Shown here: positions 1-33,420 of the stretch, one piece after another
Position numbering within the stretch: the first letter of the stretch is position 1
Layout: each line of letters begins with the position of its first letter
Assembly: GCF_032191835.1 (NCBI RefSeq)
Contig: NC_083237.1
Location: 39,990,001 to 40,054,000 of the forward strand
Direction of reading: 5' to 3'
DNA length: 64,000 bases
From: Heteronotia binoei
Taxonomy: Eukaryota
Translations under genes and position numbers: made by a program
The notes under the pieces: generated by a model
Databases searched by the model: none
Told to the model about the DNA's origin: nothing
Seen by the model: only the letters and a program-made list of their open reading frames with translations

Positions 1-2
1 TC

Positions 3-2768
3 CATCCAGTTTGTCTGTTGGTAGTTGACATAGCACCGGAGGTATTGTTCTAGAAGCCCGTTCACCCTCTCCGTCTGGCCGTCTGTTTGTGGGTGATAGG
101 CGGAACTGAGCCCCTGCTCTATCCCTGCCAGCTTGCAGAACTCCCGCCAGAAGTTGGCAAAGAACTGTGGCCCGCGGTCACCAATTACCTTATCTGCGAA
201 GGAGTGGAGGCGGACCACGTGGGTGAAGAATAGATAGGCCAGTTTCTTGGCCGTGGGTAATTGCTTGCACGGGATGAAGTGGGCCTGTTTCGAGAACGTG
301 TCCACCACTACCAGGATTACTGTCTTCCCCTGGGAGGGGGGCAGTTCTACTATGAAGTCCATAGACACCACTGCCCATGGTCTGGTTGCCGTTGGCAGTG
401 GGATTAGATGGCCAGGTGGCTTCCCCCCCCCCCTCCTCTTGGTCATGATGCATGTCGGACAGGAGCTCACAAATTCCGACACATCCTTTTTCAGGTGGGG
501 CCACAAAAATTGCCGGGTGACCAGGTTGAGCGTTTTTACATAGCCGAAGTGCCCTGCCAGGCAGCTGGAATGGCATTGCGTTAGGACCTCGCCACGTAGG
601 GTTTTTGGCACATAGATTTTCCTGTTGTAACACCAGAGCCCTCCTTCTCCCTTTTCCACGCCTTCAGGCCGTTCCCCTCCCTCCGCCTCTGTTTCAGCCA
701 TGAAGTGCTCCCTTTCCTTGAGCTCTGGGTTTCCTGTCTTTTTCCCCGACCGGGTGGTGACCCCACCTGCCACTTGGGTGGGGGGAATGAGGGAATCTAT
801 CACTTCCTCCCTCTGGCTGTCATGTTGGGGCATGCGCGAGAGCGCATCGGCCAAGAAGTTCTTTGTCCCAGGGATGCGCTTCAGCACAAAGTCGAATTTG
901 GCAAAAAACCCCGCCCACCGTATTTGTTCGGCGGTCAGTTTACGGCGGCCGGTTAGCGCCTCGAGGTTTTTGTGATCTGTCCAAATCTCAAAGGGGACCC
1001 GGGCTCCTTCCAGCCACGACTGCCAGGTTTTTAGGGTGAACATGACTGCGAAGGCTTCTTTGTCCCATACTGACCAATTCCGCTGTCCATTTGAGAATTT
1101 ATGGGAGATATAGGCGCAGGGTCTAAGTCCCCCCTCGTCGTCCCGCTGCATCAATATTGCCCCCACAGCAACGTCGGAAATGTCGCATTGGACCACGAAT
1201 GGTTTTAGCTCGTTTGGGTGGGCTAACACTGGCTCACTCGTAAACAGTCGTTTCAGCTCATCAAACGCGCTCTGGCACTCTGGTGACCAAGCGAGGCATG
1301 CCCCTCGCTTTTTCGCTTCCTCCCCCTCCCCCTTGGTCTTGAGGAGCTCAGTGAAAGGTAACATGACACGGGCGAACCCTTTGATGAACCCGCGGTAGAA
1401 CTTTGCGAATCCGAGGAAAGATTGTAGCTGCCGTCGGGTTCGGGGCGGTTCCCAATCTAGCACTGCCTGGATTTTCGCGGGGTCCATCGCTAGCCCTTCC
1501 CCCGACACTCTGAAACCCAGGTAGTCTAGCTCCGTCTTGTGGAATTCACACTTGGTCAATTTGGCATACAGTTTGTTTTGATATAAGGTGGTTAACACTC
1601 TCCTGACTAGTGGCACATGTGAGTCAAGGTCCTTAGAGTAAATAATGATGTCATCCAGGTACACCACCACCCCCTTATATAAATATTCTCTTAGCACATC
1701 ATTGATAAAGTTCATGAACACTCCCGGTGCCCCCTGCAACCCGAACGGCATCACCAAATATTCAAACTGTCCCATCGGCGTGTTGAACGCCGTTTTGCAC
1801 TTGTCCCCCTCCTTGATCCGCACCCTAAAGTACGCATCGCGGAGGTCAAGTTTGGTAAATATTTTGCCCTCCGCCACCGTGCTTAGCAAGTCCTTTATCA
1901 GCGGGATCGGGTAAGCATTAGACATGGAAATCCCGTTTATCCCGCGAAAATCTGTGCAAAGTCTCAAACTGCCGTCCTTGCGAAACAGGACGGGGGCGGC
2001 ATGGGGAGCGGTGGCAGGGCGGATGAATCCCCTCTTCAGGTTTTTGTCTATAAACTTTTTCAACTCCGCTTTCTCCGCCCAGCCCATCGAGTAGAGCTTA
2101 GCTTTTGGTAGCTCTTGCCCCGGTATTAGCTCGATGGTGCAGTCAGTTGGGCGATGGGGGGGTAGTTCGTCCGCCTCTTATTCGCTAAATGCCCTTTTCA
2201 AGTCCTGGTATTCCTTGGGGATCGATTTCACCTCCTCTATGGTCAGGCATAGCCGCTCGTTCTGCGGCGGCGCTTTGGGCCCCCATTCCTTCCGCCAATG
2301 GTGATGCTCACACCGCCAGTCTGGGAAACACACGATCTGTGCTTCCAATCGTATGTCTGGCTGGTGTCTCGCTAGCCAGCCCGCCCCCACCATCGCATAG
2401 AACGAGGACGAGGGGGCTATTACAAACGTCTCGATCCCCCAGTGGTCCTCGGTCCCTACTGGTACTGCTTGAGTCTCTTCCGTGCAGGGCTCCCCTCTCA
2501 TTACTGACCCGTCCATTTGCTCAAACTGGATGGGGTGGGGTAGAGGGGACCGGGTTAGCCCAAGCGCCTCTACCAGGTGGGGGGTGATGATGTCTCTAGT
2601 GCACCCTGAGTCTATTAGGGCCCGGGCGTGCATGAAGCGTTTTAAATTGGGGTTCAATAAAGTCACGGCCATAAATAACAGATCCCCGGTTACTCTCACC
2701 GTCATTGGTGCCGGCGCTTCCCGGACCTGCTTTGCGGCACCGATTAAAGCAGGTCGCTGTCGTTTCCC
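3..2768 (-). pseudogene. pol: Gypsy pol (PR-RT-RH-IN), a single frame with one premature stop at 2178-2180
   Basis: FSE*EADELPPHRP; the same frame still reads GLLEQYLRC at 59-33, and the ORF track lists no closed ORF in this frame below 2178, so it stays open to the window edge. Confidence 0.9.
2724..2768 (-). promoter_or_regulatory. -1 programmed ribosomal frameshift signal (gag-pol)
   Basis: Slippery heptamer G GGA AAC (2768-2762), 6-nt spacer, perfect 10-bp stem GACCTGCTTT/AAAGCAGGTC; gag reads GGA AAC, pol reads GGG AAA. Confidence 0.8.
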
Positions 2769-3884
2769 GTTGACTCTGGGTCCCACGATTCCTCGCTCGA
2801 TTCTGCGATAGTTATAATTTCCTCGTCAATCACCATAGATGTGGCGACGGCACCCCAACTGGGCTCCTTGGCTCACCCCCCCTTTCTTCGGGGTGCCCGC
2901 AGGGGGCTTCGGTGGTGGGGAAGTGAGCGACGGCTTCTCGGGGCAGTTGGCGGCCAGGTGCCCCGGGTCTCCACATCGGAAGCATCTTCTGCCGGCCCCC
3001 ACCGGGGTGGACGTTGAGGGGGGTTTCTTTCCCTCCGGCTTGGGCGCTGGGGTGCTCAGCCTTCCTCCCCTTTTCCCCAGTTGTTGCTGACGGCGCATCC
3101 CCACATGTTGCAGGTTCGTCTCCACTTCCCCTGCGAGTTGGATCCAGCCCACTAGGGTGTCAGGCCTTCCCTGGTGGTAGCATCTGTCGAGGATGTTCGC
3201 GTTCAGGCCATTCTTGAACGCGGTGTACTTCATCATCTCGCTCGAGCCTCGCACCGCCGCACAGTGGGTCATGAACTCGGTGGCGTACTCTCGGGTGGTG
3301 CGGTTCCACTGTTCGATTATCTGGAGGACTTCGATGGCTTTCTCCTCCCTCAGGGGGTCCCTGTACTGCTGCAGCATAGCCTGGAGGAATTTGGCTACCG
3401 TCGCTAGCTCCGGCTTCTGTCCGGTGTACAGCCCCACGTACCATTTTCTCGCGGCCCCTTTGAGCTTAGATGCGATGTGGTCTACTCGGCTGGCCTCCGT
3501 CGGGTAGCTCACGCCCCAGTGGGTGAAGAAATTGTTGGACTGGATGGTGAAGTACTCCACTTCGTCTCCATCCCTATCGAACGAGATCTGCAGTTCGAGG
3601 ACCCTTCCTCCGACGCCCGCCCCTGGGGCGGCCGGTGCCGCGGGCGGCGGCAGTCCGGCCGGAGGAGAAAGGGCCGGGGCCGCGGGGCCCGGCACTGGCA
3701 GCGGAGCCAGCGGGGCGGCGGGTATCGGCGGCGGGACCGGCGGAGCGGCGGGACCGGGCATCTGCGGCCAGACTGGGCCCCCCCATCAGCGGGAGGGCCC
3801 GCAGGCTGGCCCGGCGCCCCGTCAACTGGTGCGGGCGGTAGCACGGGTCCTCTCCCCGGGGGACCTCTCGTCCACTGCGTCCAT
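2744..3884 (-). pseudogene. gag: Gypsy gag with frameshifts (near the 5' end and at the G7 run 2876-2882)
   Basis: ORF 2826-3761 has a retrotransposon-gag core and zinc knuckle; the native acidic tail IDEEIITIAESSEESWDPESTGNDSDLL* is in the +1 frame, stop at 2744-2746; likely start ATG 3884. Confidence 0.8.
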
Positions 3885-4002
3885 GAGTGTGGTGGACTTC
3901 CGCGGGCTCCAGCTCCGCGTCGGGAAAACAGCCGTAGAAAAGTGAGCCGGGTCTTTGACTTTTCGTCTCACGGCAGTCACCCCGGGCCCTAATGTGTTAT
4001 AA

Positions 4003-4431
4003 TGTCAGAACTGGAAGAACTTCAATCGAGGCCCAAGACTTCGTTACAAAAGTATAGGCATTTATTGAGAACTACAATGCTGAAGGTACAGAATAACACT
4101 GATAACGAAGCTAGAATTGGTTACATTTTATGCAGTTGTAGCAGCAACAATAAAATGATCTTTCACACGGTCAGAGACAACTGTCTGTTTCTCAGGGTCT
4201 GTTATCAGCAAGGGAAGATGGAGCCCTGCTGAGCTGTCCTGGCCGGCTGGTTTCAAAGGCCACCTGCAGATGTTGACCAGAGGCTATCTGCCACCCTTCA
4301 GTGATCACAGGCTGTTTGGAATGCATGCTATTTTGGTTAGTGGCCTGGCATAAAGCACATTGGGTTAGTATCTGGTTACAATATGGAGTCAGTTAGGTTA
4401 ACAGCATACAGGAAAGTTACAAGTTCTGACA
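4003..4431 (-). repeat. 5' LTR of the Gypsy element (429 bp)
   Basis: Perfect 9-bp terminal inverted repeat TGTCAGAAC...GTTCTGACA; on the minus strand a TATA-like CATAAAA (4132-4126), Inr TCAGT (4102-4098) and AATAAA (4066-4061). Confidence 0.9.
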
Positions 4432-6272: not shown

Positions 6273-7195
6273 CAGATTGGAGGGAAGAAGTGAGCTGGGC
6301 GATCCATCTTGCCATAGCGTCCAGCACTAAAAGGTTGTATGACCGGGCGGCTAGCCAGTTTTTGGTTTTCAGAGAGGGGGCAGGATTACCTGATGTGTGG
6401 CCCATCCCTGTCGAGCAGTTGTTGCAATTTTGTGTGCATCAGAAGCAGCGGGGTCTTTCAGTTAAATCTATTAGAGGCCAGATGGTGGCACTGGCTTTTA
6501 TGAGTAAGGCCAGGGGGCATGGCGATGCGACTAAGGATTTTCGCATACAAAAAATGCTGGAAGGTTGGTCCCGTGAATCGGGACCCCGGGTTGATGGTAG
6601 GCAGCCTATCTCACCATCTATTCTCAGGGGGCTTCCTGCCTCTTGGGCCCTTGTTTGCGGGTCTGCTTATGAGGAGGCACTCTTCCATGGTGCCGCATTG
6701 ACGGCCTTTTTTAGGGCCTTTAGAGTATCCGAGCTGGTATCGCTCTCCCACAACGATGTTTCTGCAAGGGCCCTGCAGTTTAGGGATGTTAGTTTATCCA
6801 GCAACCAGGTGGCGTTCAGAGTCCGCCATTCAAAGATGGACCAGAAGCAGCATGGCTGCACTGTGACGATTGGAACTTGCGCTGAGCGGAAGTTATGCCC
6901 AGTGGCTGCAATCAGGCATTACATTGAATGGCGTGGCATATCTGATGGCCCCTTTTTCCACCATGTCGACGAGGCCCCTTTGACGAAGTACCAATTTTGG
7001 ACTGTCACGAGTCGAGCCTTGCAACATTTGGGCCTCGGGGGTCGAAAATTTGGTACCCATTCCTTCAGAATCGGTGCAGCTTCCACAGCCGCATCGCTGG
7101 GCTATGGAGGAGAGGACATTCGTCGAGTGGGGCGTTGGAAGTCGGGGGCTTATTCAGCCATTGCGGTCTTAAGGATGGTCGTCTTACCCCTATAA
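6251..7195 (+). pseudogene. Ngaro-1 tyrosine recombinase
   Basis: AFRVSEL, HSKMDQ, THSFRIG, GRWKS motifs; the C-terminal catalytic Tyr region is degenerate. Confidence 0.85.
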
Positions 7196-7265: not shown

Positions 7266-7842
7266 GTGCTGTGGCTGGTGGTGAGAGGAAAAGGATCCTT
7301 ATATGCGGCCACAGCATTGTTTTTTGGGCGGCACACCAGGCCCAACGGATGCCGATCGGTTCCCAGCTGGGCCTGAGCGACAGAGCTGTAATTACATGGC
7401 ATGGCCGCCGTGGTATGAGGTGGCCCGGGCTTCTGCCTCTGTTGTTTAGGGACCTGGGTGGCCCTCCTCCGCAGATTCTGGTAATACATCTGGGAGAGAA
7501 CGACTTGGGTCTGATGAAGGGGAAGGCCCTTTCGATTCAGGCCGAGTCGGATCTGGCTTTGATCGGCAAAAGGTGGCCAGGCGCCTTATCTTGTGGTCGG
7601 CCATGTTGCCATGCTATGTTTGGCGGACAGCTTGGGACCTAGCTGGTTTGGAGCACGCCAGAATAAAGGCCAACAGGGCCTTGCGCAAAGCCCTCTATGG
7701 CGGACTCGAGGGTTATGTGCCCCATCCTTTTATTCAATCTAGTATGCCGGAATTGTACAGAGAAGACGGGGTCCATCTGACAGAGAAGGGCAACGAGCTA
7801 TTCTTAGCCGACTTGCGGCAAGGGCTGGTTCGGGTTTTATAG
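7266..7842 (+). pseudogene. Ngaro-1 SGNH/GDSL hydrolase ORF (frameshift near 7590)
   Basis: Blocks CGHS, GRRG, HLGEND, DGVH; no ATG; preceded by an acceptor-like ctaat..ttttttcttctAG (7264-7265). Confidence 0.85.
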
Positions 7843-7883
7843 TTTGGGGTACAGCGGCCTAAGCAGAGGCTTGACGCTGTCTG

Positions 7884-9044
7884 TGGCAGTTTGTGGTTGG
7901 AATTATGTTTTGGGGATTGGTGAGCTCCCGTAGCATTGTGCCATTTTGGTGCATGGCTTCCCTGGGGGACCGTTAAGCTGTACGGCCCAAGGTTGGCTCC
8001 AGGGAGTCTGTGGGATCCCGGCACGCGGAGAGTGTCCGCATCCCAGGCTGCACAGCTGTGGGGATGGCGGAGCTCAGGTGAGCGGTGATCATGTTGCCAG
8101 GCTGGCCGGGTCTGAGCCGTTGGGTCGGCTCATATTCGGGGCTCTGGGGATCGCCCAGTTTCAGGTCAAGGAGGTGGTTGACCCCTGGCTTGATCTGTCC
8201 CCATGTTTTGCCCTTGCCGTTAAGTTAATAAAGTGGCCCTTTAATCCAATCTGGTGTCTGTCACGTTATTCCGCCTGGGGGGGCAATTCGGCCCCCTTCC
8301 CAGCTGAGCAGTCCATCGACCGCTGATGGTGGTTGCCGTCCATTGCCTCCCCGCGTGGATTCGAGGCAATGGTTGTTCCCAAGGGGGAGGGGGTGAGGTG
8401 CGGCTTTAAGAGGCTGCCCCGCCCCCTGACACGCAGTTGAATTTAGCTCTCGTCCCACCCACCTGACCATCAAGCAGTACAGGCAGAGGCTGGTCGCCTG
8501 TTTCTAGGGGCCGGGTAGGAATTTTTCACCCCTGGACTGATTGGCCTTGTTCGGGGGTGTTTTTGCCTACCCTGTACTGCTGATGTTTGGTGCTAGCAAT
8601 TTGAATGGTGGTGCCGTTATATTGGTTGGTCACTGGCAGTTCATGGTTGGGATTATGTTTTGGGGATTGGTGAGCTCCCGTAGCATCGCGCCATTTTGTT
8701 GCATGGCTTCCCTGGGGGACCGTTAAGCTGTACGGCCCAAGGTTGGCTCCAGGGAGTCTGTGGGATCCTGGCACACGGAGAGTGTCTGCATCCCAGGCTG
8801 CACGGCTGTGGGGATGGTGGAGCTCAGGTGAGCGGTGATCATGTTGCCGGGCCGGACGGGTCTGAGCCGTTGGGTCGGCTCATACTCGGGGCTCTGGGGG
8901 CTTGCCCAGTTTCAGGTCAAGGAGGTGGTCGGTTGACCCCTGGCTTGATCTGTCCCCGTGTTTTGCCCTTGCCGTTAAGTTAATAAAGTGGCCCTTTAAT
9001 CCAATCCGGTGTCTGTCTCGTTATTCTGCCTGGGGGGGGGCAAT
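7884..9044 (+). repeat. Ngaro-1 terminal repeats: B1 7884-8284, A2 from 8285, B2 8634-9041
   Basis: B1 and B2 are ~400-bp direct repeats (about 20 or more differences by eye), each with AATAAA; A2 has TTTAAG and ACGCAGT. Confidence 0.9.
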
Positions 9045-10461
9045 GAATAGAGCATTAATAGAATGGATATTCAACAGTAAAAATTGCAGATTCCATAAGC
9101 AAAGAATATATAATCATAAATCAGAATTTGGATGGGGAATTCCGGACCTAAATATTTCAACTAAAACCATTTAGTTGAAGCCTTTCAACTAAAACCATTA
9201 TTAGAAATATGTGAGGAAAAGACTCAGAAGTGGGTCAACTTTGAGAATGAAATAAATAATAATATAGGTAGATCAGGCATTTTTTCTAAAGTTACGAATA
9301 AAGACTTACTATTAACAATAGGCCCTAGAAGAGCTTCATTAGAGGTTGGGAAGAAATGGCAGCCGCATTGGTTAGGAAGAGTTTCTAGATGGGCACCCCT
9401 GGAAACTGTTAGTGAGGAAGTGAAAGAAACTAATTGGTGGGAAAGGTTAAACCTCAAAGGTTATTGCAGAGTAGAAGACATGTTTCAAAGTGGAAATCTT
9501 AAACCCATACAGGAAATAACAGAAGAAATAGAAAAACAATATTGGTTAAAAGTAGCTGGGCTTTACAAGACAACAAAAAAAGATTAGTGAAAATGAAGTT
9601 TTTTGGGTAGACACGCCAATGGAAGTATTATACAAAGAAATGGCAAAGCAGAAAAGGGGCTTAGTAGGGAATATATATAGAATGATGATAGTAAATAAGG
9701 AAAAAATAGTAGAGTATTTACAGAGGAGATGGAGCCAGGAGGGCTGGTTATCAGAGAGGACGGTGGAAAAAAATTAAGAAAGGAATAGAAGAATTAAAAG
9801 TAACTAAATTTAAAGAACTTGAATATAAATTTCTTACAAAATGGTATAAGACTCCAGCACAATTAGCTAATATGATTCCAGGATTGAGTCCGCTATGCTG
9901 GCATTGTAAACTTTCTAAAGGGTGGTATGCTGATATGTGGTGGGAATGCCCGGAAGTAAAGACCTTTTGGAACAAAATTATCAAAATAATCAGAAAAGTA
10001 TGCAATATAACATTAACTATAGAGTTTAATCTTATGTTGGTAAGTACAATAGGTAGCCCGATAATAGACAGGAGTATGCAAAATTTAGTCAAGGCTATGG
10101 TATTGGCAGGTAAGGCAGTTGTTGCTTGGGGTTGGAAGGACAAAAGTAAATGGACAGTAGAAATCTGGCACAATTATTTGTTTGAATTTATACAGTAGAC
10201 ATCGTGGCGGTACTTAACAAGGTGACAACATGGGATGTGAAAACCAAGGAAATTACGACCAGATGGAAGACCAACCTAGAATGGACAGCGATAGAAGGAA
10301 GGATGGACATTCAGTGGAAGACTAAGACTTTGTGCCCACGGCTGGGGGGAAGAGACTAGGAGTTAAGGGTGGGTGGGGAGAGGGAGGAAGGGCGTATTGG
10401 AAATATAAATATTTCTTGTAATGGACTAAATAGAATAACAAATAAAGACTATTAAAAAAAA
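9045..10461 (+). mobile_element. L1-clade LINE, degenerate 3' part of ORF2 plus 3' UTR
   Basis: FGWGIPDL and the zf-RVT-like CWHC..MWWEC; G-rich 3' UTR, AATAAA 10441-10446, short poly(A) 10454-10461. Confidence 0.8.
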
Positions 10462-13020
10462 TAGCTGAACATGATACAGAGCAGCCCATTGGCAATGCTC
10501 TGTCCATGTAAAATTGGCCCTCAAAAGAAAAACCCAAAAGTTCAAAATCCACAGGATGCACTGGCAGAAGGCGAAATGCAGATTTAATATTGCACTTAAC
10601 CAACTCAGCACCCTCTCCGCAGCGTCTCACCACGGCTACGGCCTGGTCAAAACTAGTATACCTAATCGAGCATAAATGCTCAGAAATCCCATCATTAACG
10701 GACTTCCCTTTGGTGAAGGAAAGATGGTGAATCAAACACAATTCCCCAGGTGCCTTTTTAGGCACCACGCCCAAGGGGGAAACCCTAAGGTTATGCACAG
10801 GGGGATGGGGGAAAGGGCCCAAAATCCTGTCCTCAGCAAACTCCTTGGCAATCTTATATCCAACAACCTGCTCTGAACCCTTAACAGAACTAAGATTCCC
10901 AGACATAAAAGGGGCCCACGGCCCCTGAAAATGGATCCTAAAACCAAATAAAAAACCTTTTAGCAAGTAAACGCTGTCAGCCCTTTGTGGGTACCTAGAC
11001 AGCCAATACGCAAGCGGACCCACCTTTATCAGACTGGGCCCCTTTTCCAGCCTGATAGGTTCCTTCCCCCTTTCCTGGCTTCTTTTGATTTTTGCATCCC
11101 CGGGCTTTAGGGCAGTTATTGAAAGAGTGAGGCCCACCACACATGGGGCGTTCATGCTTTAACTGGCAAGCCTTTCTGCTACATACTCCCTGAGAACCAA
11201 ACTCCCAACAAATCAGGCGGGGTTGAACCGCCTGTCCCACAGAACTGTGGAAAGAGGCAGATGACGATGAGGAGTTCACACCTGACCTGGTCACCAAATG
11301 ACTGCTATCAGAGCAGTCACCTAAATTTGGCCGAGCCGGGGACATGACCTGCAGCCACAGCTGCTGATGAATGTGTTCCCATTGAAGGGGAGGATACAAG
11401 GCCACTCTCATCCTAAACTCCTCATCATTCTGCATCCAGGCAGGCCCGCTAAATGCCTTGTACCCTTTGTAAATTATGTCCATGTATGGGATAAGGGCAG
11501 CAGCCCTCCAAGGCTGAGCCTGAGCAATCACCCCAGAGTAGATAAAAAACCCAGGCAGCCAATTAGCCCAAGTCCACTCCACTTTGCGCTTCTTTCACTT
11601 TTCTTTTTCATCTAACTCCTCTTTGTCTTTTTTCTCCAACTCCTGAAAAAGGAGGGAGAAAATATCCATGTACTCACCCTTTAAGACTTTTTTCCCTAGC
11701 TGCAGGTAACAAATGGTCCCCCAAAGGCAACACTACATCCCCAAAGGGTAATGCAGTAAAAGGAACCATCCCATAAGGAAAAGGGGCACCCCAATTCCCC
11801 ATAAAAGAGCCTGCAACACCCTGCTGCCCAGCACCCAGCCAAGCTCCACTAGGGCCGCATTGACCAGTCAGCCAAGCCCAATTAGATAACGAGCCCGTAC
11901 CTAAAGGGGAAGCAAACCCTGTACTCACAGCAGGGATGCCCTGCCCGGCAGGCGCAGCAGAACCCCGAGGCCCCCACGGCCAAGCCAGCCCAGCATTCAC
12001 CTGTAAAATGTCCCCAGCCTTACCCACATATCCAGCAGGCACCAGCGTTGACCCAACTCCAGTAGCTCCTGATGATTACCCCGATGCTGTATCTGGACCT
12101 CCGAGACCCATGTCACTGCCCGCGATGCAAGCACCAGATCTGCCCTCAAGGATAGGCAACTTGGTTAACACATTCGCTTGGAGCCCCCTTTTAGAAGCCT
12201 TTACCCTCCCCCCCCCCTCAGAAGGAGAAATACCAGATACCCGCCTCTGCATAATGTTAACACTAACTGCCTCATCACCTTCATCATCAAATGATGACAA
12301 CGGGGGTGGAGGCCTCTTCGCAGGTGCCTTAGGGGCCTTTGGTGCCGGCTTTTTTCCTTTTGAGCTACCAGACCCTTTTCCACCTGACATCCTTATAAGC
12401 TAAAGACGACCCTCAAAATGGCCACCAAAAAAGAGCCTTCTAAAATGGCTGCCCACCCCTAAAGAAGAAAGGGATCTCAAAATGGCTGACAACCCACTCC
12501 AATAAGAGGGAAGCAAAATGGTTGACTCAGTCACCACTCTCCCCTAACTTCCACCGAGACACTGAGCCCAAAGCAAAAAACCCCTTCCCTGCCCAAGGAC
12601 GGAGAGGGTGAGCCACCCAGCCGAAGACAATAAATAATACTACCACCTTAATTGAAGTTCTCCAAAGGGAGAGGGCAAGCCACCCCATCAAAGTCAATAA
12701 AACAATACCGCCATCTTAAATGAAGTTCTCCAGAACAGTCACCGCAGACCCAACAACCATCGACGAGCCAAGGAGCCCCCAGCAACCACATGACAGGACC
12801 TTCAACTGCCAATGCGGCCCCCACCTTGCTGAAAGACATGCGGCTCGTGTCTCCCGTGGCCACGCCGACGCAGATGGAGAACGGGCCTCCTTCCTCACTT
12901 GAAACACACGCTCCCTGCCTGAGCCGAAAGCACGCTCCCTGCCCGAGCCAATCTTCCCGAGGACTGCAGCAGGGAGTGGAGGTCTGGCCATTACAATGGC
13001 CTGGCCCTGCCCCCTAAATT
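10462..13020 (-). mobile_element. Ngaro-type element, copy 2 (5' end, gag, RT N-half), interrupted by the L1
   Basis: gag ATG 12390 (MSGGKGSGSSKGKK), WPWG, VEWTWANWLPGF, CCCH/CCHC fingers, RT up to ALPMGCSVSCSA; begins with AAT at 13020-13018. Confidence 0.9.
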
Positions 13021-13339
13021 GTGCGCCCAAATGGGCTGTATCTCCTCCCCTTCCTCAGAGGGAGGCAAAGTCTGCTTCTGCAGCCTAGCAGCTTTGCTGC
13101 AGGCTGCAAGCATCTAATTCTGTCTACTCTGTCCCACCAGTTGTTACAATTTTTAGAGACTCTTCCCCATAGCCACAAGAAGCCACAAGGAGCTGTCTGT
13201 TTAAAAATAAAGGAGAGTCTGATTGAACTTACTTGGTGGAAGGAAGGGCTCTCATTTTCCCTCTGTGTTGTATTCCCAACCAGAACTGTCCTAGGGTGCT
13301 CTATTTGCATAGAATAATCTCCTGGGGATAAAACACACA

Positions 13340-13600: not shown

Positions 13601-14313
13601 TCACTTTTTAAATAGAAAACTAGTTATTAATTCTCAAAGTAATACATGAACATAGAAACAAATTCTTATTTAATGGCAGAGGAAGATAATTTTCCCTGTT
13701 TTTTCTGTTTGTTAAAAGTATTTATAGGTTTGCAAGCTTTTTTGCTGATCACATAAGCAAAATGTTTGCAATAAAGTCAAGCTGAGGTTTCCCCCCTTTT
13801 TGAGTAGATAGTACTTTATTTGCTATCCCAGTTAACATTCTATGCATCTTATTGGTCTTGTGTTTGCTGTTTCCAAACCAGTAATAAATACTTCTCTAAA
13901 TATTAAAAAAAGATTGAGTCTAAAATACAACATATTCCTACTACTATCATCATGTTGAAAGATTCGGGAAGAAACTTTTGTTGTTGTTGTTCCTACTCCA
14001 TTCCATTATACTTCTCACACTAAAACTAAAAACTCAAGTATATAAATGAAATATAAACTATTGTAAGAGCCTATAAGAAATTGTTCCACCCTATAGATTT
14101 TATTCTGACACAAAAAAGTAGAATATCATAGTTATCACATGAATTAAAAACAAGTTAAAACAAGAATGATAAGAACCAGTGTAGGACAGTAACTTGGTAA
14201 TGTTGCTATGATGTACTTTTCTGAGTGGTGTCAATTATATTAGCCACTGGCCACAAGGCCATTGCTACTGATAGGGGAGGACAAAAGATGAATTACTCTC
14301 CATCTCCAATAAT

Positions 14314-15261
14314 TCACTTGGAAATCCCAAACTTGTTCACAGCTCTCATTAAAGCTTTTTTTACTTCTTTGTTTCTTAAACTATAAACAAGGGGATTAAT
14401 TAGAGGGGTTAAGACTGTGTAGAAGACAGAGAAGATCTTGTCCACTTCTCTCAGAGCTTCCTTTTGTGGTAGCACATATACAAATAACAATGAACCATAA
14501 AATACAGAAACTACTATGAGGTGGGAAGAGCAGGTGGAAAAGGCCTTTTTTCTCCCATCTGAAGTTGGGATTTTTATGATGGCAGCAATTATACAAATGT
14601 AAGACAGCAGGGTCAAAAGAAAAGAAGGAACAATATCTATGAAAGATACTGTGAGGCTCACCAGCGTCACCAGAGTTTGGTCACTGCATGATAGATTAAT
14701 CACCGGTATCAAGTCACAAAAAAAATGATCAATTTCATGGGGGCCACAGTATTTTAGCTGTGACATCAAACTCAATAGTAAAGTCATGACCGTTATCCCA
14801 CCAAGCCAAGATACAGCTGACAAGAGAAAGCAGAGACTTCTGCTCATAAGAGTTGCATATTGGAGGGGCTTGCATATTGCCAAATAACGATCATAGGACA
14901 TTGATGCCAGTAGGTAGCATTCAGCAATGGCAGATATACCAAAACAGTAAAGTTGAATATAGCAGCCCTCAACAGAAATGGTTCTGTCCCCTGTCAGGAA
15001 ACTGGCCAACATCCTGGGGAGAAGGGTTGAAGTGTAGAAAGTCTCCAAACAGGACAAGTTTCCAAGGAAGAAGTACATGGGGATGTGAAGCTGATGATCT
15101 CTAATCACTAACACAATGATGATGATGTTTCCAGCCATCGTCACACTGTAGGTTATTAGGAAAACCAGGAAGAGAGGAATCTGAAGTTCAGGATCATTCC
15201 CAAATCCCAGAAGAATAAATGTAGTTATTGCTGTCTTGTTATCTGTCTCCATATGCTCCAT
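14314..15261 (-). CDS. Olfactory receptor, class II, OR11A1-like (OR1 of the array), 315 aa
   Basis: LHIPMYFFLGNLS, MSYDRYLAICKPLQY, HFFCD, KAFSTCSSHL, PLINPLVYSLRN; N-glycan site NKT; splice acceptor at 15274-15273. Confidence 0.96.
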   Translation of the reverse strand: MEHMETDNKTAITTFILLGFGNDPELQIPLFLVFLITYSVTMAGNIIIIVLVIRDHQLHIPMYFFLGNLSCLETFYTSTLLPRMLASFLTGDRTISVEGCYIQLYCFGISAIAECYLLASMSYDRYLAICKPLQYATLMSRSLCFLLSAVSWLGGITVMTLLLSLMSQLKYCGPHEIDHFFCDLIPVINLSCSDQTLVTLVSLTVSFIDIVPSFLLTLLSYICIIAAIIKIPTSDGRKKAFSTCSSHLIVVSVFYGSLLFVYVLPQKEALREVDKIFSVFYTVLTPLINPLVYSLRNKEVKKALMRAVNKFGISK

Positions 15262-16561
15262 ATTTTGAATCACTGAGAATGAAATTAGAAAATCATAAGG
15301 CCTCCAAGACCCAAAGCCTAGACATTATTTTACCCTTTCTCGCACAGCTAATGCTGGGAAGTGAAAACCACCCCAAAAGACCTCTTCTGATATAAAGTTA
15401 ATTATGTAGGTATTACCTCAAGTAATAGAGCATCTCATTGTTACTTGATGACAATCTGATGATGTTGTCTCCCTGATGACGACATCAACTTAGGATATTG
15501 TAATTCATTGTTAATGCTGGACTGTAAAATAGCTAACAGGCACCACTCTGTCATTCGTTCATTTATTTTATTTCATTTATACTGTGCTTTCCCCACCCAC
15601 CCCCGATGGGGACTGAGAATGTCTTACATAATTTTCTTATCCTCCATTTTATCCCAACAATGGACCTAAAATGTAATCTCCCCTCAAAGTATGCTGTAAT
15701 GTCCTCTTCAAAATAAACCTGTTCTTCTGTCTTGTATGAGTAGGTGCTAGACAAGAACTGGTTCCAAAAACAAAACAAACAACTATGCAACCATAATAAT
15801 AGAAATTCCCCACTCCAGTTTCATAAATGTGTTAAATTAATATTATTAATCAGGATCTACTTTTGTGTGAATCTGGGTTGAATTTTAAAGTTGGCCATAT
15901 TCACACAGACATAGATCTTCTTGACTACAATCAGCTTGTATTGTCATATTGATTTCTATTTTGCAAATGAGGCTTTGTCTTAGAGGAAGCCCCCATCCTC
16001 CTTGTATAGAACAATTCATTTGATGGAATATTTTGGACAGCATCTGCCCATAAATGAAGCTATTTTCCCAGAAGCAGAGTCTGAGAATTGTGCTATCTTT
16101 AAATACGACCTATGCAGTGTCATTGGAATGAGACACACACACACACACACACACTTCTATATATACTTATATCTTTAACAATCACCTGGCATCAATGAAG
16201 AATGGTTGAGAAGTAGGTCCTTATAGCTGTTGCACATTTGTCTAGCTATCATAAGAAATGACTAAATTTCCTGAAGGAAACAATAATCTACCTTCATCTG
16301 TACAGTACACAAAAGAGGCTTTATACAAGGGAACGGCAGACTGTCTACAAAGAGCAACCTCTTGGTACTTTAAAGAAATACTTTCAGAACAATTAGCAAA
16401 TCCCCCTTGTAAAACATATGATGCAGTACTTATTAAAGCGTCAAAATACTCCAGTCCTTTATTTTGTACCCTTGTTTCAAAATATATATGACATCTCTCC
16501 AGAGACCTCCTTAAGTGAGTTCTTGTAAGTGAAGTGTCTTAATCACAGGGAGATTCTTATT

Positions 16562-16587
16562 TCCCCAGTGATAATGAACAAATAGTC
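16562..16587. promoter_or_regulatory. Candidate OR promoter composite: O/E (EBF)-like site abutting a homeodomain site
   Basis: TCCCCAGTGA-TAATGA-ACAAATAGTC, identical at 62801-62826; TATA-like tract about 75 nt toward the gene. Confidence 0.45.
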
Positions 16588-17657
16588 TTAGCCCTGCTGG
16601 TGAACCTCCTGACGGCACCTGGGTTTTAGCCACTGTGTGACACAGGGTGTTCGACTGTTGACCTGCATCATTAAATATAAATGGAAAATATCAATTGCAT
16701 ATATGTATGCCACCCAAAATAATTAAAATCCAAAATAAAATTAATATTACAGAGATTTTTAGAGGTATAAATCCAAAACCATTTAGAGGCATGGTTCAGG
16801 ACCTTCATGTCTGTTACACAGTTTCACTCACTGGGTCATAGCTCTCTATACTGCTGCCATTTTTATGTATTTTGGCTTTCTCTGCTGCTATGTGTATGTG
16901 TAGAGAACAAGAGACCTGTGATTCCTGCCTTTTTTGTTTATACACCGGAGAGGACAGTGAGTCAAAGACACTCAGTGGTGGAGAGGATTCCTCCATGCTG
17001 CAGACTTATGCTTCTTCCCCCTACAGAAAGCCTCCTCATGTCCAGCTTGCTTCCTGTCCCATGTCTCATGATTCTAGCATGGAATCTGTCTTGCCCTCTT
17101 CCTGACCCCTGACTTATTGTCGTGTGCTGTTCATGTACCTTTTAGTTCACTTAAGGCTGCCTTATAAAGAGTGAGACCATTGGTCAATGAAGTTCCATAT
17201 CTAAATAAAACTGTGAGGGGAAATGGCTCTCCATCGTCTCAGGCATAGATCTTTCACATCATCTACTACCTGAGTCTGTTAACTGGGGATGGTGGGAACT
17301 GAATTATTTTCTGTCCTAGGGAAGGATTATCCAACCTCCTGGATCCACATTCCTCCCTACTCTAAGATTACATTAAGTGTGTGTGTGTTTAAAGGAAACA
17401 AACAAAAAGAACCCTTCTGTCTATAAGATGAGTTTTGTTTTGTTTACCTAATTTGAGTTTTGTTTACCTAATTTGTTTGATATCATCCTTTCTAGACACT
17501 GAGTGCAATTATAGCAGCAGAATAGTTTCCCCTCCTGTTCTATTTTGCCATACCCAGAAGGGCAACACTCAGAGTGTAGAGAATAAGGCAGTGTTTGAAC
17601 AGAAAAAGAAGAATAAAATGTGGTATCAGCTTCATGGCCCTACAGATCAGAGCTTGC

Positions 17658-18960: not shown

Positions 18961-19285
18961 AGCCAGTTTGGTGTTGTTTAGAGCCAGTTTGGTGTAGTGG
19001 AGAGCCAGTTTGGTATAGTGTTTAAGTGTGCGGACTCTTATCTGGGAGAACCAGGTTTGATTCCCCACTCCTCCACTTACAGCTGCTGGAATGGCCTTGG
19101 GTCAACCATGGCTCTCGCAGGAGTTGTCCTTGAAAGGGCAGCTGCTGTGAGAGCCCTCTCCAGCCCCACCCACCTCACAGGGTGTCTGTTGTGGCGGAGG
19201 AAGGTAAAGGAGATTGCGAGCCGCTCTGAGACTCTTCGGAGTGGAGGGCGGGATATAAATCCAATATCTTCTTCAATATCTTCTT
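18961..19285 (+). mobile_element. tRNA-derived CORE (MIR/Ther1-like, Squam3-like) SINE with a reiterated 5' head
   Basis: A box, B box ggtttgattcc, core cacctcacagggtgtctgttgtgg, L2-like tail, (tct)n end. Confidence 0.8.
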
Positions 19286-24116: not shown

Positions 24117-24217
24117 CCTTTTTGTGATGCAGTGACCATAATTGTACACAGTTTTCCAAATGAGGCCGCACCATCGATTTATAGGATGCTGGTACCGCAT
24201 TTCAGTTTGGTGAAACT

Positions 24218-24498
24218 GGAGAGCCAGTTTGGTGTAGTGGTTAAGTGTGCAGACTCTTATCTGGGAGAACCAGGTTTGATTCCCCACTCCTCCACTTGCA
24301 CCTGCTAGCATGGCCTTGGGTCAGCCATAGCTCTGGCAGAGGTTGTCCTTGAAAGGGCAGCTGCTGTGAGAGCCTTCTCCAGCCCCACCCACCTCACAGG
24401 GTGTCTGTTGTGGGGGAGGAAGGTAAAGGAGATTGTGAGCCACTCTGAGACTCTTCGGAGTGGAGGGCGGGATATAAATCCAATATCATCTTCTTCTT
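24218..24498 (+). mobile_element. CORE-type SINE, same family as 18961-19285
   Basis: Near-identical to the copy at 19003-19285. Confidence 0.85.
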
Positions 24499-26605
24499 AT
24501 ACAGGAGCATCATGATACTGGCTGATTTATTTTCAATTCCCTTCCTAATAATTCCCAGCATGGTGTTGGCCTTTTTTATTGCAATCACACACTGTCTTGA
24601 CATTTTCAGTGAGTTATCTAGCATGACCCCAAGATCTCTCTCTTGGTCAGTCTCTGCCAGTTCACACCCCATCAACTTGTATTTGTAGCTGGGATTCTTG
24701 GCCCTAATGTGCATTACTTTACACATGGCCACAATGAACATCATCTGCCACATTGATGCCCACTCACCCAGCCTCAACAGATCCCTTTGGAGTGCCTCAC
24801 AATCCTCTCTGGTTCTCACCACCCTGAACAATTTAGTGTCATCTGCAAACTTGGCCACTTCACTGCTTACTCCCAAGTCCAGATCATTAATGAACAAGTT
24901 AAAGAGCATGGGACCCAGTACTGAGCCCTGCGGCACCCCACTGCTTACCTTCACTGTGATAAAAAAAAATACAATTTTTACATTAAAGTAATTAATGCCG
25001 GAAATAAAACATTCTTTGATGGCCCAGGTAGAGAATGTTCAATATTGACTGCCATTGTTTATGATCAATACTTAGGGATTTGCAATAGGAATGGGAACAA
25101 ACTGAAAAATGAACCATGAATTGGGCCAATTCATGGTTCCTTTTGAACTGGTTTGGTGGTTCATTTGGTTCATTTTTGCGGTTCATTTTTTCAGACAGCC
25201 TGGCACTGATTCAATCAATTCCTAAGGAATGCAGGGGGGTAGACTTCAGGAAGCCCTAGAAATACCCATAGCAGTTGACCATAGTTTGACTAGCAGCTCT
25301 GGGAGCCAATCATGGAGCTCCCATTCTGCTCTGTGGAAGCTGACACCCTGACTCAGCTACTTTCACTTTGCAGCAGCAATAGAGAAGAGTTAGTTGCTGT
25401 GAGAGCTGAAGCCAAGCTTTCCTGGGGGCTACTGGGGGCGGGGGGCTAAATTGCCGACATTCCAAACCCAAACTTTGCCATACTTGGAGGGTGGATGGAG
25501 GAGAATCTGCTGAAGATTCCTGGAAAAATTTCGTATCTCTAACTCACCAAACTACACCTCCTGAACCAAACAAACCATGAATCAGTTTGGACAATCAAAC
25601 AAACCATGAACCAACACAAAACACCATTTTTCCTGACTCGCCCATCTCTAATTTGCAACCTTTTTCGTGTTCACAAATCACAATTTTTGCAGTAAAATCA
25701 AGCATCAGCTATTTTCATTTTGACTAGAGAGTAACATATTTGCTATCCCTAAAACCATTTTATGAATCTTCTTTATTTGTCTGATGTTTTAACACCAGTA
25801 ATAAATATGTTCCTTTCCTTTAATCTTATTAAAATTCCTTGACTAAAAGTCTTGAGCAATCAAAAAACCATCTGTTAAGTAGCATTATCTGGACACAACA
25901 CTATAGACGTGGAAAAAAAATTGTAACATGAAGGGTAAGGCTATGGAATCTGCCAGCTAAAAGCAGCAAAACTAGTTTAGGGTGAGACAGATAAAAAAAA
26001 AACCCTAGCTACTGTGTGGGGGAAAAACCCTATTTCTAAGTCTAATATAAGAGGACACTCCATTAAAATAAAGTACCAATTTTTGCTTGAGAATAATCAC
26101 AAAGCTGGCCTGAATAAGGAAACTTTCTTAACCTTGTCTTCATAACAGGAGTGGCCTGTGCAATCAACATACGTAGTGAGAAAGTTTTAAAATAATTTGG
26201 GTTAGTTAGATAAAAAGCAAAGGAAGGCAGAGATTTTGGTGCAGGAATATAAAAAAATAAAGAACAAACCTTATGGGCATGAGACCATGTGCTCCAGTAA
26301 TCAAAGACAAATATTTATCTCAAAATTATTAAAAAAAATGGTGGGGGGAGAGTATCTCAAATGCTCACCACATAGTCCTACTACTATCATTGTGTTGACA
26401 GTTAATTCACGGATGAATCAAGATCGGCATAAAAAGAATTTGGGAAGAAATAGGATTTTTTTTTTTTTTTTTTGGCTTTTACTGCATTCCATTATGACTT
26501 CGCTACTAAAGCTGAAAACTCAAATATATAAATAGAATAGAAAATATTACAGGAGCCTAAAATTGGTCCATGCTGTAGATTTCATTCTACACCAGTTTGA
26601 TCTAA

Positions 26606-27574
26606 TTATTCTCCATCTCTAACAAACCACTTAGAAATCTCAAACTTATTTATAGACCTCCCTAAAGCTTTTTTTACTTCTTTATTTCTTAGAGTATAGA
26701 CAAGTGGATTAATCAGGGGGGTTAAGACTGTGTAGAAGACTGAGAAGATCTTGTCGAGTTCTCTCAGAGCTTCTTTTTTTGGTAGTGCATACACAAATAT
26801 CAATGACCCATAAAATATGGAAACTACAATGAGGTGGGAAGAACAAGTAGAAAAGGCTCTTTTTCTTCCATCTGAAGAAGGGATTCGTATGATGGCAGCA
26901 ATTATACAAATATAAGACAGCAGGGTCATGAGACAAGAAGGAACAGTATCTATGAAAGATACTGTGAGTATCATTAGTGTCACCACAGTTGTTTTACTGC
27001 ATGATAAATTAATCACTGGTGTTGAATCACAAAATAAATGATCAATTTCACGAGGGCCACAGAATTTCAGCTGTGACATCAAACTCATTATTATAGTCAT
27101 AATTGTTATCCCACAAAGCCAAGAAACAGCTGACAACAGAAGGCAGATTCTTCTGTTCATGAGAGTTGCATATTGGAGGGGCTTGCATATTGCCAAATAA
27201 CGATCATATGACATTGATGCCAGTAGGTAGCATTCAGCAATCACAAGTGTACCAAACCAGTAAAGCTGGATATAGCAGCCCTCAACAGAAATGGTTCTGT
27301 CCCCTGTCAGGAAACTTGTCAAAAGCCTGGGAAGAAGGGTTGAAGTGTAGAAGGTCTCCAAACAGGACAAATTTCCAAGGAAGAAGTACATGGGGATGTG
27401 AAGGTGATGATCTGTGATTACTAACACAATGATGATAATATTTCCAGCCACGGTCATACTGTAAATTATTAGGAAAACCAGGAAGAGAGGAATCTGAAGT
27501 GCAGGGGCATTCTCAAATCCCAGAAGAATAAATGTAGTTATTACTGTCTTGTTATCTGTCTCCATATGCTCCAT
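26606..27574 (-). CDS. Olfactory receptor, class II (OR2), 322 aa with a 7-aa read-through tail
   Basis: Same motifs as OR1; the paralogous TGA is TGG here, adding WFVRDGE. Confidence 0.95.
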   Translation of the reverse strand: MEHMETDNKTVITTFILLGFENAPALQIPLFLVFLIIYSMTVAGNIIIIVLVITDHHLHIPMYFFLGNLSCLETFYTSTLLPRLLTSFLTGDRTISVEGCYIQLYWFGTLVIAECYLLASMSYDRYLAICKPLQYATLMNRRICLLLSAVSWLCGITIMTIIMSLMSQLKFCGPREIDHLFCDSTPVINLSCSKTTVVTLMILTVSFIDTVPSCLMTLLSYICIIAAIIRIPSSDGRKRAFSTCSSHLIVVSIFYGSLIFVYALPKKEALRELDKIFSVFYTVLTPLINPLVYTLRNKEVKKALGRSINKFEISKWFVRDGE

Positions 27575-27831
27575 ATTTTGAATCACTGAAAATGAAATTA
27601 GAAAATCATAAGGCCTCCAAGACCCAAAGCCTAGACATTTTTTACCATTTCTTCCACAGTTAATGCTGAGACTTATAAAGTATTTTCATGTGTTTTATCT
27701 GGACATGTGGAAACCATCCCAAATTACTTTTTTTTCTGATACAAAATTAATTGTGCAGATATAACCTCATGTAGTAGACCAACCCATTGATACTTGATGA
27801 CATCATCAGGTCTCCAAGTAAAAGACTCAAA

Positions 27832-29198
27832 GGTCGTTTTCGCACTTAGCGTTTGCTCCCCTTATTCCGCGGCGCAATTATGTCCGGATCATTTTTCTCG
27901 TTTTCGCACTAGTGACTCTTTGCGGAGTCGCCTTCCCTGAAGCCCCGGCTCAAATCGTTTTCCCACTGGCATCAACTTGAGTTCGATGCCCTGTCAATCA
28001 TTTTTTTTTTAAGCGCAAGTCTGGTTGCGTAAGGACGTACTAACGTACTAACGTAACATCGAGCAGGCACAGCTATTCCCTCCCCTTCTTTTCGTGGACA
28101 AACCGCATCATGTGTGCTGCTGCTGCTTATGGATTGGCTGCAGCTGTAGAATCCTCCACAGCCCTTTATGTATTAACAGAAGCATTCACAGTGGAGAATC
28201 CTAGCACTAGATTCCCCCCCCCCCCAAAATTCTGAAGTTGCGAAATATCGCAATAACGAAGAGAGAGAAATCGAGGGGTTTGTGTGTGTGTGTGTGTGTG
28301 TGGCAGCTTCTTCCTTTCCCAGCCTTGCTCCCTCCCGGGTGGCGAAGCTGGGATTTCCTCCGCTCTCTTTCCCCTCCCCGGCTGGCGCTTGCAACGGGGA
28401 CCTGACTGATTCCTGCTGCCAGAGCTCCCCCCCCCACCCCATTCTCTCCTTCCCCTTCTGTGGCGCGTGTGAAGAGCGAGCTCGCGTCTATTTTCTAACC
28501 GAGCGGAATGTAGCCAGGGAGAAGAATGCAGGACTCCAACTTCCCATTTTATACATGGCGATTTTGTGCAGGTCCAGAAATCCTGGTGGCACAGCTGAGG
28601 GAGGCATTCCCTTTTTAAAACACACACACATGAACGCTTTGGCCCGCACCGGCACTAGATTCCCCCCCCCCCAACAATGGTCGTTTTCGCATTATCGAGA
28701 TAACGCAACAGCGAAATAACGCAACTAAAGTCAATAATAATAATAAAAAATTCTAACGAAACCAATTGAAGTGGCAATTGAGGCTATTCCAGGAGGGGTT
28801 TTTTTTTTCTATTTGTTAATTTCGAAATATCGCTATTACGCAAAACTGTGAAGTTTAAAAAAAATGGCCGTGCCGGCACTTTGGGGAAGCGCCGCAAAAG
28901 GCTGATGATTGGCCAAGGGGGTGGATGGGGTGGGAGGACGGAAAGGGAGAGGGTGACGCCCACAAAGCAGTCAATCCGGCGTGGATGGATTTCCCACAGC
29001 AAACTCCGAGGAGTGGATCTGGTGTGGATCCGGAGGTTTTCAAAAACTCCGGAAGGAGGTGGATCTAGATACTCCGGCGTGAAACCCCTGCAGCGCTGGA
29101 GCAAACCGCAGCGCCGGAGCAACAGGTGGGAAAACCAGGAAGAGATCCGGAGGTAAATGGGGTGCTACGCCGGAGTAAACGCTAGTGCGAAAACGGCC
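27832..29198. mobile_element. Non-autonomous PIF/Harbinger-like DNA transposon
   Basis: TIR ggtcgttttcgcact..agcgttt / aaacgctagtgcgaaaacggcc; 3-bp TSD aaa. Confidence 0.75.
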
Positions 29199-29441
29199 AA
29201 AGCCTAGAAATTATTACAGCCTCTCTCCCACAATTTATGTTGAGATTTATAAAATGTTCTTGTGTGTTTTATCTGAACATGAGGAAACCACACCAAAAAA
29301 CTTTTTTTTTGTTACAAATTTAAATATGAAGCTATTACTTCTAATGATAAGCTATCTCATTGTTTAATGACAACGCCAAATAATGATATTGTAATCCATT
29401 GTTATTTCTGGACCATAAAATGGCTAGCAGGTAACATTTAT

Positions 29442-30120: not shown

Positions 30121-30330
30121 GGGAGGGACGGTGGCTCAGTGGTAGAGCATCTGCTTGGGAAGCAGAAGGTCCCAGGTTCAATCCCTGGCATCTCAAAAAA
30201 AGGGTCCAGGCAAATAGGTGTGAAAAACCTCAGCTTGAGACCCTGGAGAGCCGCTGCCAGTCTGAGAAGACAATACTGACTTTGATGGACCAAAGGTCTG
30301 ATTCAGTATAAGGCAGCTTCATATGTTCAT
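30121..30330 (+). mobile_element. tRNA-headed SINE
   Basis: A box tggctcagtgg, B box ggttcaatcc, non-tRNA body and LINE-like tail. Confidence 0.8.
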
Positions 30331-33313: not shown

Positions 33314-33420
33314 CAGGGGTGGGGAACCTGTTTTCTGCCAAGGGCCATATGGATATTTATAACATCATTTGTGGGCCATAAAAAATTATCAACTTAAAAA
33401 ACAGTGCTCTGCCAAGGGAG
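33314..33420 (+). mobile_element. hAT-like MITE that hosts Ngaro-3 (continues at about 38928-39000)
   Basis: Starts caggggtggggaacct; the halves rejoin as gccaagggag-aatg-attcaggcc. Confidence 0.55.

Follow-up and report, generated by a model that had tools for sequence, protein, structure and literature searches.

The 64,000 nucleotides (nt) of Heteronotia binoei DNA analyzed here (contig NC_083237.1, forward-strand positions 39,990,001 to 40,054,000; hereafter the window) harbor a Ngaro-type tyrosine-recombinase retrotransposon in three copies, an element organized by split repeats in the order A1-[open reading frames (ORFs)]-B1-A2-B2. The non-repeated spacer between A2 and B2 folds, as plus-strand RNA, into a three-way junction, and comparison with related elements indicates that selection has maintained this fold in geckos, in other lizards, and in a snake. 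A Ngaro cis element supported by covariation is now defined, confirmed at the level of sequence comparison, and extended to five squamate lineages. The long arm of the junction appears to have the architecture of an element for nuclear expression (ENE), a type of poly(A) clamp. The most likely function of the squamate Ngaro spacer, held tentatively, is that of a cis-acting structured 3′ RNA domain containing an ENE-like clamp for the poly(A) tail.

The spacers of copies 1 and 3 adopt the same fold on the plus strand, at positions 8474-8580 and 38377-38485, as an initial annotation of the window had proposed from these two sequences. The predicted minimum free energies (MFEs) are −54.0 kcal/mol for copy 1 and −52.8 kcal/mol for copy 3, with z-scores of −4.63 and −6.57 against 200 dinucleotide shuffles, none of which folds as well; the minus strands fold much more weakly (−40.1 and −35.8 kcal/mol). 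Its branches are P1, the outer stem; P2, a short hairpin that is optional; P3, a second hairpin; and a long arm. In the long arm, P4 (GGUAGG/CCUACC) forms the lower stem and P5 the upper one, with a large internal loop between them and an apical loop beyond P5 (Table 1). The outer stem, the GGTAGG/CCTACC helix, and the inner stem with its compensatory changes had all been recognized correctly in the initial annotation. The conserved side hairpin is not the AGGC..GCCT proposed there; what comparison supports is the optional hairpin P2 followed by the conserved GGUCGCC..GGGGCC hairpin P3. The junction is kept in the MFE folds of all seven whole spacers examined. In most of these folds a C-rich linker between A2 and the junction, a (CCCN)3-4 tract found in seven of seven elements, is predicted to pair with G runs of the spacer tail and thereby lengthen P1.

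A protein search with the recombinase of copy 2 as query returned hundreds of squamate and amphibian relatives, and the DNA around ten of them was examined. Five complete elements emerged, from Heteronotia binoei, Eublepharis macularius, Pogona vitticeps, Elgaria multicarinata, and the snake Erythrolamprus reginae, with A1/A2 and B1/B2 repeats that are 98-100% identical. Every complete element carries a non-repeated A2-B2 spacer of 158-189 nt. A covariance model (R1), built from the two window copies and the complete Heteronotia element, yields exactly one strong match per complete element (54-108 bits), starting 16-22 nt past the end of A2, and an additional match in a decayed second Pogona copy. 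Within the window it matches only copies 1 and 3, which score 121.6 and 123.5 bits as members of the training set. The initial annotation had also described the fold as absent after A1. This holds for copy 3, where the model has no match at that place; the A1 of copy 1 lies outside the window. Decoy metagenome contigs with a 19-nt motif in common (0.52 Mb) gave R1 no match, neither did four squamate loci with recombinase genes but without intact repeats (filters were off on two of them), and motif scans of public metagenome, viral, and bacterial collections returned nothing real. At the locus of a distant relative, from the frog Leptodactylus, the 3′ end is cut off by a satellite array; the Ngaro-like recombinase/hydrolase gene there sits between tandem satellite arrays (1-4110 and 9814-12674 of that locus) with periods of ~31, 62, and 93 nt. 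Plain nucleotide searches matched only the spacer, and not A or B, both between the window copies and in the second Pogona copy; those run between species used spacer queries only. The fold core is the best conserved non-coding piece of the element, with a mean pairwise match of 70%, compared with 54% for A and 61% for B.

In a model-based alignment of eight sequences, standard pairs make up 95.4% of cells, and double changes occur in 21 of 35 pairs, values reached by none of 500 shuffles. When the pairing partners are slid by 1-3 columns, pairing falls to 37-47%. Since such an alignment leans toward its own model, a plain MAFFT alignment was also passed to RNAalifold; P1, P3, P4, and P5 were recovered independently, with 16 of 26 pairs compensated. 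P1 varies freely with compensation (AGUACAG/CUGUACU versus AGUGUG/CACACU, for example). P5 varies at all ten of its pairs, nine of them through compensating double changes, and the apical loop changes as well. The P3 helix GGUCGCC/GGGGCC is nearly invariant in sequence, down to an invariant U-G pair.

The covariation also bears on which strand is folded. On the plus strand 97% of cells pair, versus 88.5% if the complement folds, and the seven good copies contain 21 G-U cells against a single A-C cell. Because of this imbalance between G-U and A-C cells, the folded strand is the plus strand, the sense of the element RNA, and not the minus-strand cDNA. It is therefore very improbable that the spacer acts as DNA, be it as a promoter-proximal or enhancer element, a recombinase accessory site, or a single-stranded cDNA structure. 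Candidate motifs for such a role are present: an inverted CCAAT/Y-box, ATTGG (AUUGG in RNA), lies in the apical loop of six of seven elements (8541-8547 and 38444-38450 in the window), CACCC boxes could be read in the linker, and the minus-strand (cDNA) complement of the linker, a tract present in all elements, is a quadruplex-type G3N1 x4 motif. The sequence CTGATTGG, the form that the ATTGG box of the apical loop takes in some copies, also occurs twice in the A promoter of the snake element (7110-7150 and 12970-13010 of its locus). The snake apical loop is the one without ATTGG, however, and the 21 compensated pairs, together with the excess of G-U cells, point to selection on a folded plus strand, a pattern that selection on duplex DNA or on minus-strand cDNA does not fit.

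An ENE is a stem-loop whose U-rich internal loop neighbors G-C pairs. By forming a U-A-U triple helix, ENEs grip the poly(A) tail and so guard the RNA against deadenylation; they are known from herpesvirus PAN RNA and from many transposon RNAs (PMC7583470). The ENE of the retrotransposon Evade resides in an unusually long spacer that separates the ORF from the 3′ long terminal repeat (LTR), where it protects from deadenylation and promotes mobility (PMC12501189). With the ENE defined as in these two sources, the long arm of the Ngaro fold shows a U run on both strands of its internal loop. The 5′ strand reads A(A/U)U5-7, and the 3′ strand reads U5-6(C)G in seven of eight sequences and UGUUUCG in Elgaria. 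The topmost pair of P4 is an invariant G-C, and the pair next to it is G-C in seven of eight, being unpaired only in the decayed Pogona copy. It is because the stems covary while the facing U5-7 runs are nearly invariant that the arm appears to be of the ENE type. The arm also lies upstream of a predicted poly(A) site: AATAAA follows 358-472 nt downstream in seven of seven elements, in accordance with the B2 repeat and poly(A) signal that the initial annotation had placed after the fold, and RNA depth drops after AATAAA. A strict descriptor (T5+ on both sides, each closed by a 6-bp stem) matched three spacers and nothing else in ~2.1 Mb, a total that counts both strands.

The spacer domain is arranged, 5′ to 3′, as the C-rich linker, the three-way junction, and a G/U-rich tail. 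In the proposed mechanism, the two U runs would engage the poly(A) tail of the same RNA by forming a U-A-U triple helix with it, which may slow deadenylation and decay and leave more replication-competent RNA. Poly(A) binding and RNA stabilization by the fold are thus proposed by analogy with ENEs, and the conserved P3 hairpin may be a protein-binding site.

Several observations weigh against a clamp. The U runs do not abut the G-C pairs of P4: about two non-U bases intervene, namely AA in the 5′ strand and (C)G in the 3′ strand. The 3′ U run of Elgaria is interrupted (UGUUU), and the upper closing pair is C-G in four of seven elements (the gecko-type ones) and G-U or a G-A mismatch in the others. 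Scans of 38370-38492 (123 bases) and 7800-9100 with Rfam cmscan, at E up to 10, matched no ribozyme and no other family; they returned only chance look-alikes (miRNA, intron, HIV-SD) far below thresholds. The clamp would stand ~400 nt away from the tail, which is further than in the PAN RNA of KSHV (Kaposi's sarcoma-associated herpesvirus). An ENE also leaves the three-way junction, the P3 hairpin, the C-rich linker, and the AUUGG of most apical loops unexplained. Finally, the comparative set comprises only eight sequences, all squamate, and an alignment fitted to a model is biased toward structure.

The main rival is that the fold serves as a recognition signal on the genomic RNA for the element's own proteins, a possibility that we regard as real though clearly less probable than the clamp. 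Such a signal could direct packaging by a Gag-like protein or could recruit the reverse transcriptase (RT) to start cDNA near the 3′ end; lying past A2, it would mark only those RNAs with the B1-A2 junction needed to rebuild the termini. The sequence conservation of P3, with its invariant U-G pair, and of the loop strands is typical of protein-binding sites, the fold is retained by a non-autonomous copy and is missing from B1-ended RNAs, and the start of reverse transcription is unknown across the DIRS order (PMC7192593). On the other hand, a short RNA started at A2 would be a competitor bearing this signal too, complementarity to a primer was not found, and the stems, since they covary, are not a primer-binding site. 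Recognition by proteins and clamping of the tail are not mutually exclusive.

Other readings were tried and rejected. The primer, template-switch guide, and self-cleavage roles that the initial annotation had entertained find no support. As the stems covary freely, they are not a primer-binding site; the only stretch resembling an initiator-methionine tRNA match, GGTAGTACAGG, is the covarying outer stem itself, no conserved TGG-led tract is present (complementarity to tRNA was judged by eye), and ARAGORN detects no tRNA-like gene in the spacer region. Against self-cleavage stand the lack of a match to hammerhead, HDV-like, twister, or other ribozymes in the Rfam scans and a junction with almost no unpaired conserved bases and no conserved unpaired core. 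Kissing-loop dimerization through a GGCC/UGGCCA palindrome of the apical loop was dismissed: Elgaria and the snake have a different loop, and chance alone often produces palindromes of 4 nt. A duplex between the apical loop and the sequence immediately past AAUAAA was likewise set aside, own-element duplexes being no better than cross-element or shuffled ones. Snap-back of the poly(A) tail onto the 3′ U run, to prime its own copying, is allowed by geometry; the product would miss the 3′ half of the spacer and B2, and this reading was dropped because integrated copies have both.

The layout of the repeats places the fold in the genomic RNA. New copies inherit A sequence lying upstream of the start site (its promoter part) and B sequence lying past the poly(A) site (its end), as repeats that are 98-100% identical. 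Both parts would be missing from an A1-to-B1 RNA and likewise from an A2-to-B2 RNA, whereas a B1-A2 read-through RNA would hold them. Since new copies inherit both parts, the template must be a B1-A2-spacer-B2 read-through RNA, and the fold therefore lies within the genomic RNA, near its 3′ end, in any case. This logic counts against the strict two-RNA system put forward in the initial annotation and favors the alternative given there, in which the fold acts within the genomic RNA. Moreover, as the sole non-repeated non-coding piece at the 3′ end of the element, the spacer belongs to every RNA ending at the poly(A) site of B2 and is absent from those that end in B1. Such a mark of B2-ended RNAs suits a stability element and, no less, a signal for packaging or RT recruitment. 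Copy 3 (33421-38918) is informative in this regard. It is only 5.5 kb long and has no recombinase ORF, its A1/A2 and B1/B2 repeats are 99.5% and 99.2% identical, and its spacer fold is perfect; for these reasons it is a young non-autonomous derivative. Its young repeats and intact fold, in the absence of a recombinase ORF, argue that the fold is needed in cis.

RNA data place the spacer in transcripts. Two raw RNA-seq runs (X5 and X6), which carry the species label of the contig runs containing the stretch, and two metatranscriptome contig sets were aligned to 37000-38960. The RNA-seq is unstranded, ~6% of each run was read, and depths are summed over both read orientations; 40-60% of the aligned reads fit only in part. 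Depth in X5 and X6, respectively, is 0.4-7 and 2-16 over the copy-specific internal part, 5-11 and 8-22 over A2 upstream of the start site, 21-30 and 42-46 over the spacer, and 25-150 and 55-235 over B, with a sharp drop just past AATAAA in both B1 and B2. From these depths, the spacer is transcribed, and RNAs that read through from B1 into A2 exist above background.

Whether A2 also launches a small transcript of its own is a separate matter. The spacer is covered 2-4 times as deeply as the part of A2 upstream of the start site, a rise past the predicted start that fits some initiation at A2; the step could instead stem from diverged copies that match the conserved core alone. No pile-up of read starts at the A2 start was reported in the ~6% of each unstranded run that was read. 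The initial annotation had suggested a second transcript of ~600 nt, and parts of that suggestion stand. A2 faithfully reproduces the A1 promoter (98-100% identical), the fold does start ~40 nt past the A2 initiator, and a TATA-like box precedes the fold by 63-82 nt in five of seven elements, those of Eublepharis and Elgaria being without such a match. A transcript with its start in A2 and its end in B2 is predicted to measure ~0.55-0.6 kb, in agreement with the earlier estimate. The promoter copy, the B2 AATAAA, and the rise in depth speak for the transcript; the missing start pile-up does not.

It is unlikely that the A2-spacer-B2 segment is a transcription unit in its own right, making a ~0.6-kb polyadenylated, structured non-coding RNA (ncRNA) that functions in trans. 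Besides the promoter identity and the TATA-like boxes, such a unit would draw on a spacer that begins ~35-50 nt past the predicted start, on an AATAAA supplied by B2, on the increase in depth from 5-22 in the promoter part of A2 to 21-46 in the spacer, and on the ENE-like arm, which would suit a stable PAN-like ncRNA. Against it stand the absence of a reported start pile-up and a depth rise explicable by diverged copies, 40-60% of reads fitting partly. The short RNA would also be without the promoter part of A and the end of B and so could not replace the read-through genomic RNA, and nothing in the sequence hints at a role in trans. More doubtful still is an autonomous PAN-like unit, namely an abundant, ENE-stabilized, poly(A)+ ncRNA of ~0.6 kb that has both of its ends in common with the coding RNA and plays a trans role in the life cycle of Ngaro. 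Such an RNA might titrate host decay or silencing factors or be a co-packaged partner for strand transfers, and its existence would make Ngaro a retroelement with a dedicated ncRNA gene.

The features on which this analysis rests are collected in Table 1. RT (RVT_1), Phage_integrase-type recombinase, and GDSL-like lipase/SGNH hydrolase domains are recognizable in the Ngaro copies of the window, and the split repeats A1-[ORFs]-B1-A2-B2 were mapped in copy 3 and in the elements of the five species.

Table 1. Positions of repeats, spacers, and predicted RNA structures. Window copies are numbered from the first letter of the window; the other elements follow the numbering of their own loci.
Element	Feature	Position	Strand	Remarks
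Copy 1	B1	7884-8270	+	AATAAA 8227-8232
Copy 1	A2, promoter copy	8271-8449	+	TATA-like TTTAAG 8405; initiator CAGTT ~8435
Copy 1	Spacer, non-repeated	8450-8633	+	between A2 and B2
Copy 1	C-rich linker	8450-8470	+	CCCACCCACC; A2 to fold
Copy 1	Predicted fold	8474-8580	+	P1 8474-8481/8573-8580; P2 8482-8484/8489-8491; P3 8492-8500/8505-8512
Copy 1	Long arm		+	P4 8513-8519/8566-8572; P5 8527-8537/8549-8559; apical loop 8538-8548
Copy 1	Internal-loop strands	8520-8526 and 8560-8565	+	between P4 and P5
Copy 1	G/U-rich spacer tail	8581-8633	+	reaches B2
Copy 1	B2	8634-9025	+	AATAAA 8982-8987
Copy 3	A1	33421-33602	+	followed by unrelated leader; fold absent here
Copy 3	B1	37777-38170	+	AATAAA 38113-38118
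Copy 3	A2	38176-38357	+	TATATA 38306; initiator CAGTT ~38341
Copy 3	Spacer, non-repeated	38358-38524	+	between A2 and B2
Copy 3	C-rich linker	38358-38375	+	CCCGCCCACCCGTCCC; A2 to fold
Copy 3	Predicted fold	38377-38485	+	P1 38377-38386/38476-38485; P2 38387-38389/38394-38396; P3 38397-38403/38409-38415
Copy 3	Long arm		+	P4 38416-38422/38469-38475; P5 38431-38440/38452-38461; apical loop 38441-38451
Copy 3	Internal-loop strands	38423-38430 and 38462-38468	+	between P4 and P5
Copy 3	G/U-rich spacer tail	38486-38524	+	3′ part of spacer
Copy 3	B2	38525-38918	+	AATAAA 38861-38866
Heteronotia binoei (L001)	Linker	10113-10128		
Eublepharis macularius (L007)	Linker	13234-13249		
Pogona vitticeps (L005)	Linker	10126-10144		
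Elgaria multicarinata (L008)	Linker	13209-13225		
Erythrolamprus reginae, snake (L009)	Linker	13117-13136		

The B1 and B2 repeats of copy 1 are 93.6% identical. Copy 2 (43300-48085) contains the recombinase and SGNH ORFs and stops after a single B at ~48085, without A2, spacer, or B2, a layout that fits recombination between B1 and B2 or truncation. The tetranucleotide AATG flanks copy 3 on both sides (33406-33424 and 38919-38935) and occurs once at the B1|A2 junction, and an empty site, ...GGGAG AATG ATTCAGG..., can be read from the RNA of uninterrupted copies of the host repeat. This pattern fits crossover by the recombinase at a short shared core. A hairpin, GCCTAAGCAGAGGCTTGGC, lies directly 5′ of B1 (7852-7879 and ~37750-37775 in the window, and also in the Heteronotia, Eublepharis, and Elgaria elements); it is kept in gecko-type elements and Elgaria and is absent from Pogona and the snake. 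The B repeats of nearly all elements bear a conserved G(T/C)GGCCC after AATAAA (8982-8996 and 38861-38875, for example), and those of the gecko type end in a G run beyond the likely cleavage site.

The surroundings of the Ngaro copies are themselves repetitive. Four diverged copies of a host segment of several kilobases (14192-16600, 26505-31120, 39450-42940, and 58376-62840), 61-93% identical, recur every 12-19 kb, and this spacing suggests a tandemly duplicated host locus into which the Ngaro copies were inserted. A Ty3/gypsy-type gag ORF lies beside copy 1 on the minus strand (2826-3761). Direct repeats of 277 nt at 18998-19274 and 24217-24493, 5.2 kb apart, are possibly the LTRs of another element, and a tRNA-Pro(GGG)-like sequence is found at 30124-30196.

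In its A1/A2 and B1/B2 repeats, RT, tyrosine recombinase, and SGNH hydrolase ORF, the element corresponds to vertebrate Ngaro as described (PMC9210276, PMC8547959); split direct repeats characterize Ngaro retrotransposons (Goodwin and Poulter 2004). The published descriptions found draw B1A2B2 as adjoining, with no structured spacer, whereas a unique spacer of 158-189 nt is constant here; the literature search found no description of a Ngaro cis element of this kind. Among known RNA structures, the closest likeness is to the ENEs of KSHV PAN RNA and of plant and fungal transposons such as Arabidopsis Evade/Copia93 and rice TWIFB1, which has a double ENE. Common to them are U runs on both loop strands, G-C pairs topping the lower stem, and a variable upper stem-loop. 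Evade additionally shares the placement of the motif within a polyadenylated retrotransposon RNA, namely in a unique spacer immediately ahead of the terminal repeat bearing the poly(A) signal (PMC12501189, PMC7583470). The Ngaro fold differs from these ENEs in being a single domain inside a three-way junction that adds an invariant hairpin and a basal helix, in the non-U bases between U runs and lower stem, in its ~400-nt distance to the poly(A) site, in matching no Rfam family, and in residing in a tyrosine-recombinase (DIRS-order) retrotransposon of an amniote; its triple helix is putative. Like the packaging signals and dimerization stem-loops of retroviruses and retrotransposons, it is a covarying non-coding domain of the genomic RNA that non-autonomous derivatives keep; in contrast to them, it lies near the 3′ end and not in the 5′ leader, and no palindromic loop is common to all copies. 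The 3′ hairpin of DIRS-1 has been proposed as a primer, itself a hypothetical role (PMC7192593), and the Ngaro fold differs from it in showing no primer complementarity.

Tyrosine-recombinase retrotransposons (DIRS, Ngaro, and PAT) are the least understood retroelements, and their genomic RNA, primer, and cis signals are largely unknown (PMC7192593). For Ngaro, the customary B1A2B2 drawing omits a constant structured spacer, whose fold is a compact natural RNA of ~110 nt. ENEs have so far been found in viruses, in transposons of plants, fungi, and slime molds, and in retroviruses of stickleback fish (PMC7583470). If the long arm is indeed an ENE, the known range of stability elements that clamp poly(A) would come to include amniote retrotransposons, and the location of the fold would be explained: protection would be conferred only on RNAs that run on past B1 to end at B2, those able to rebuild a full copy.

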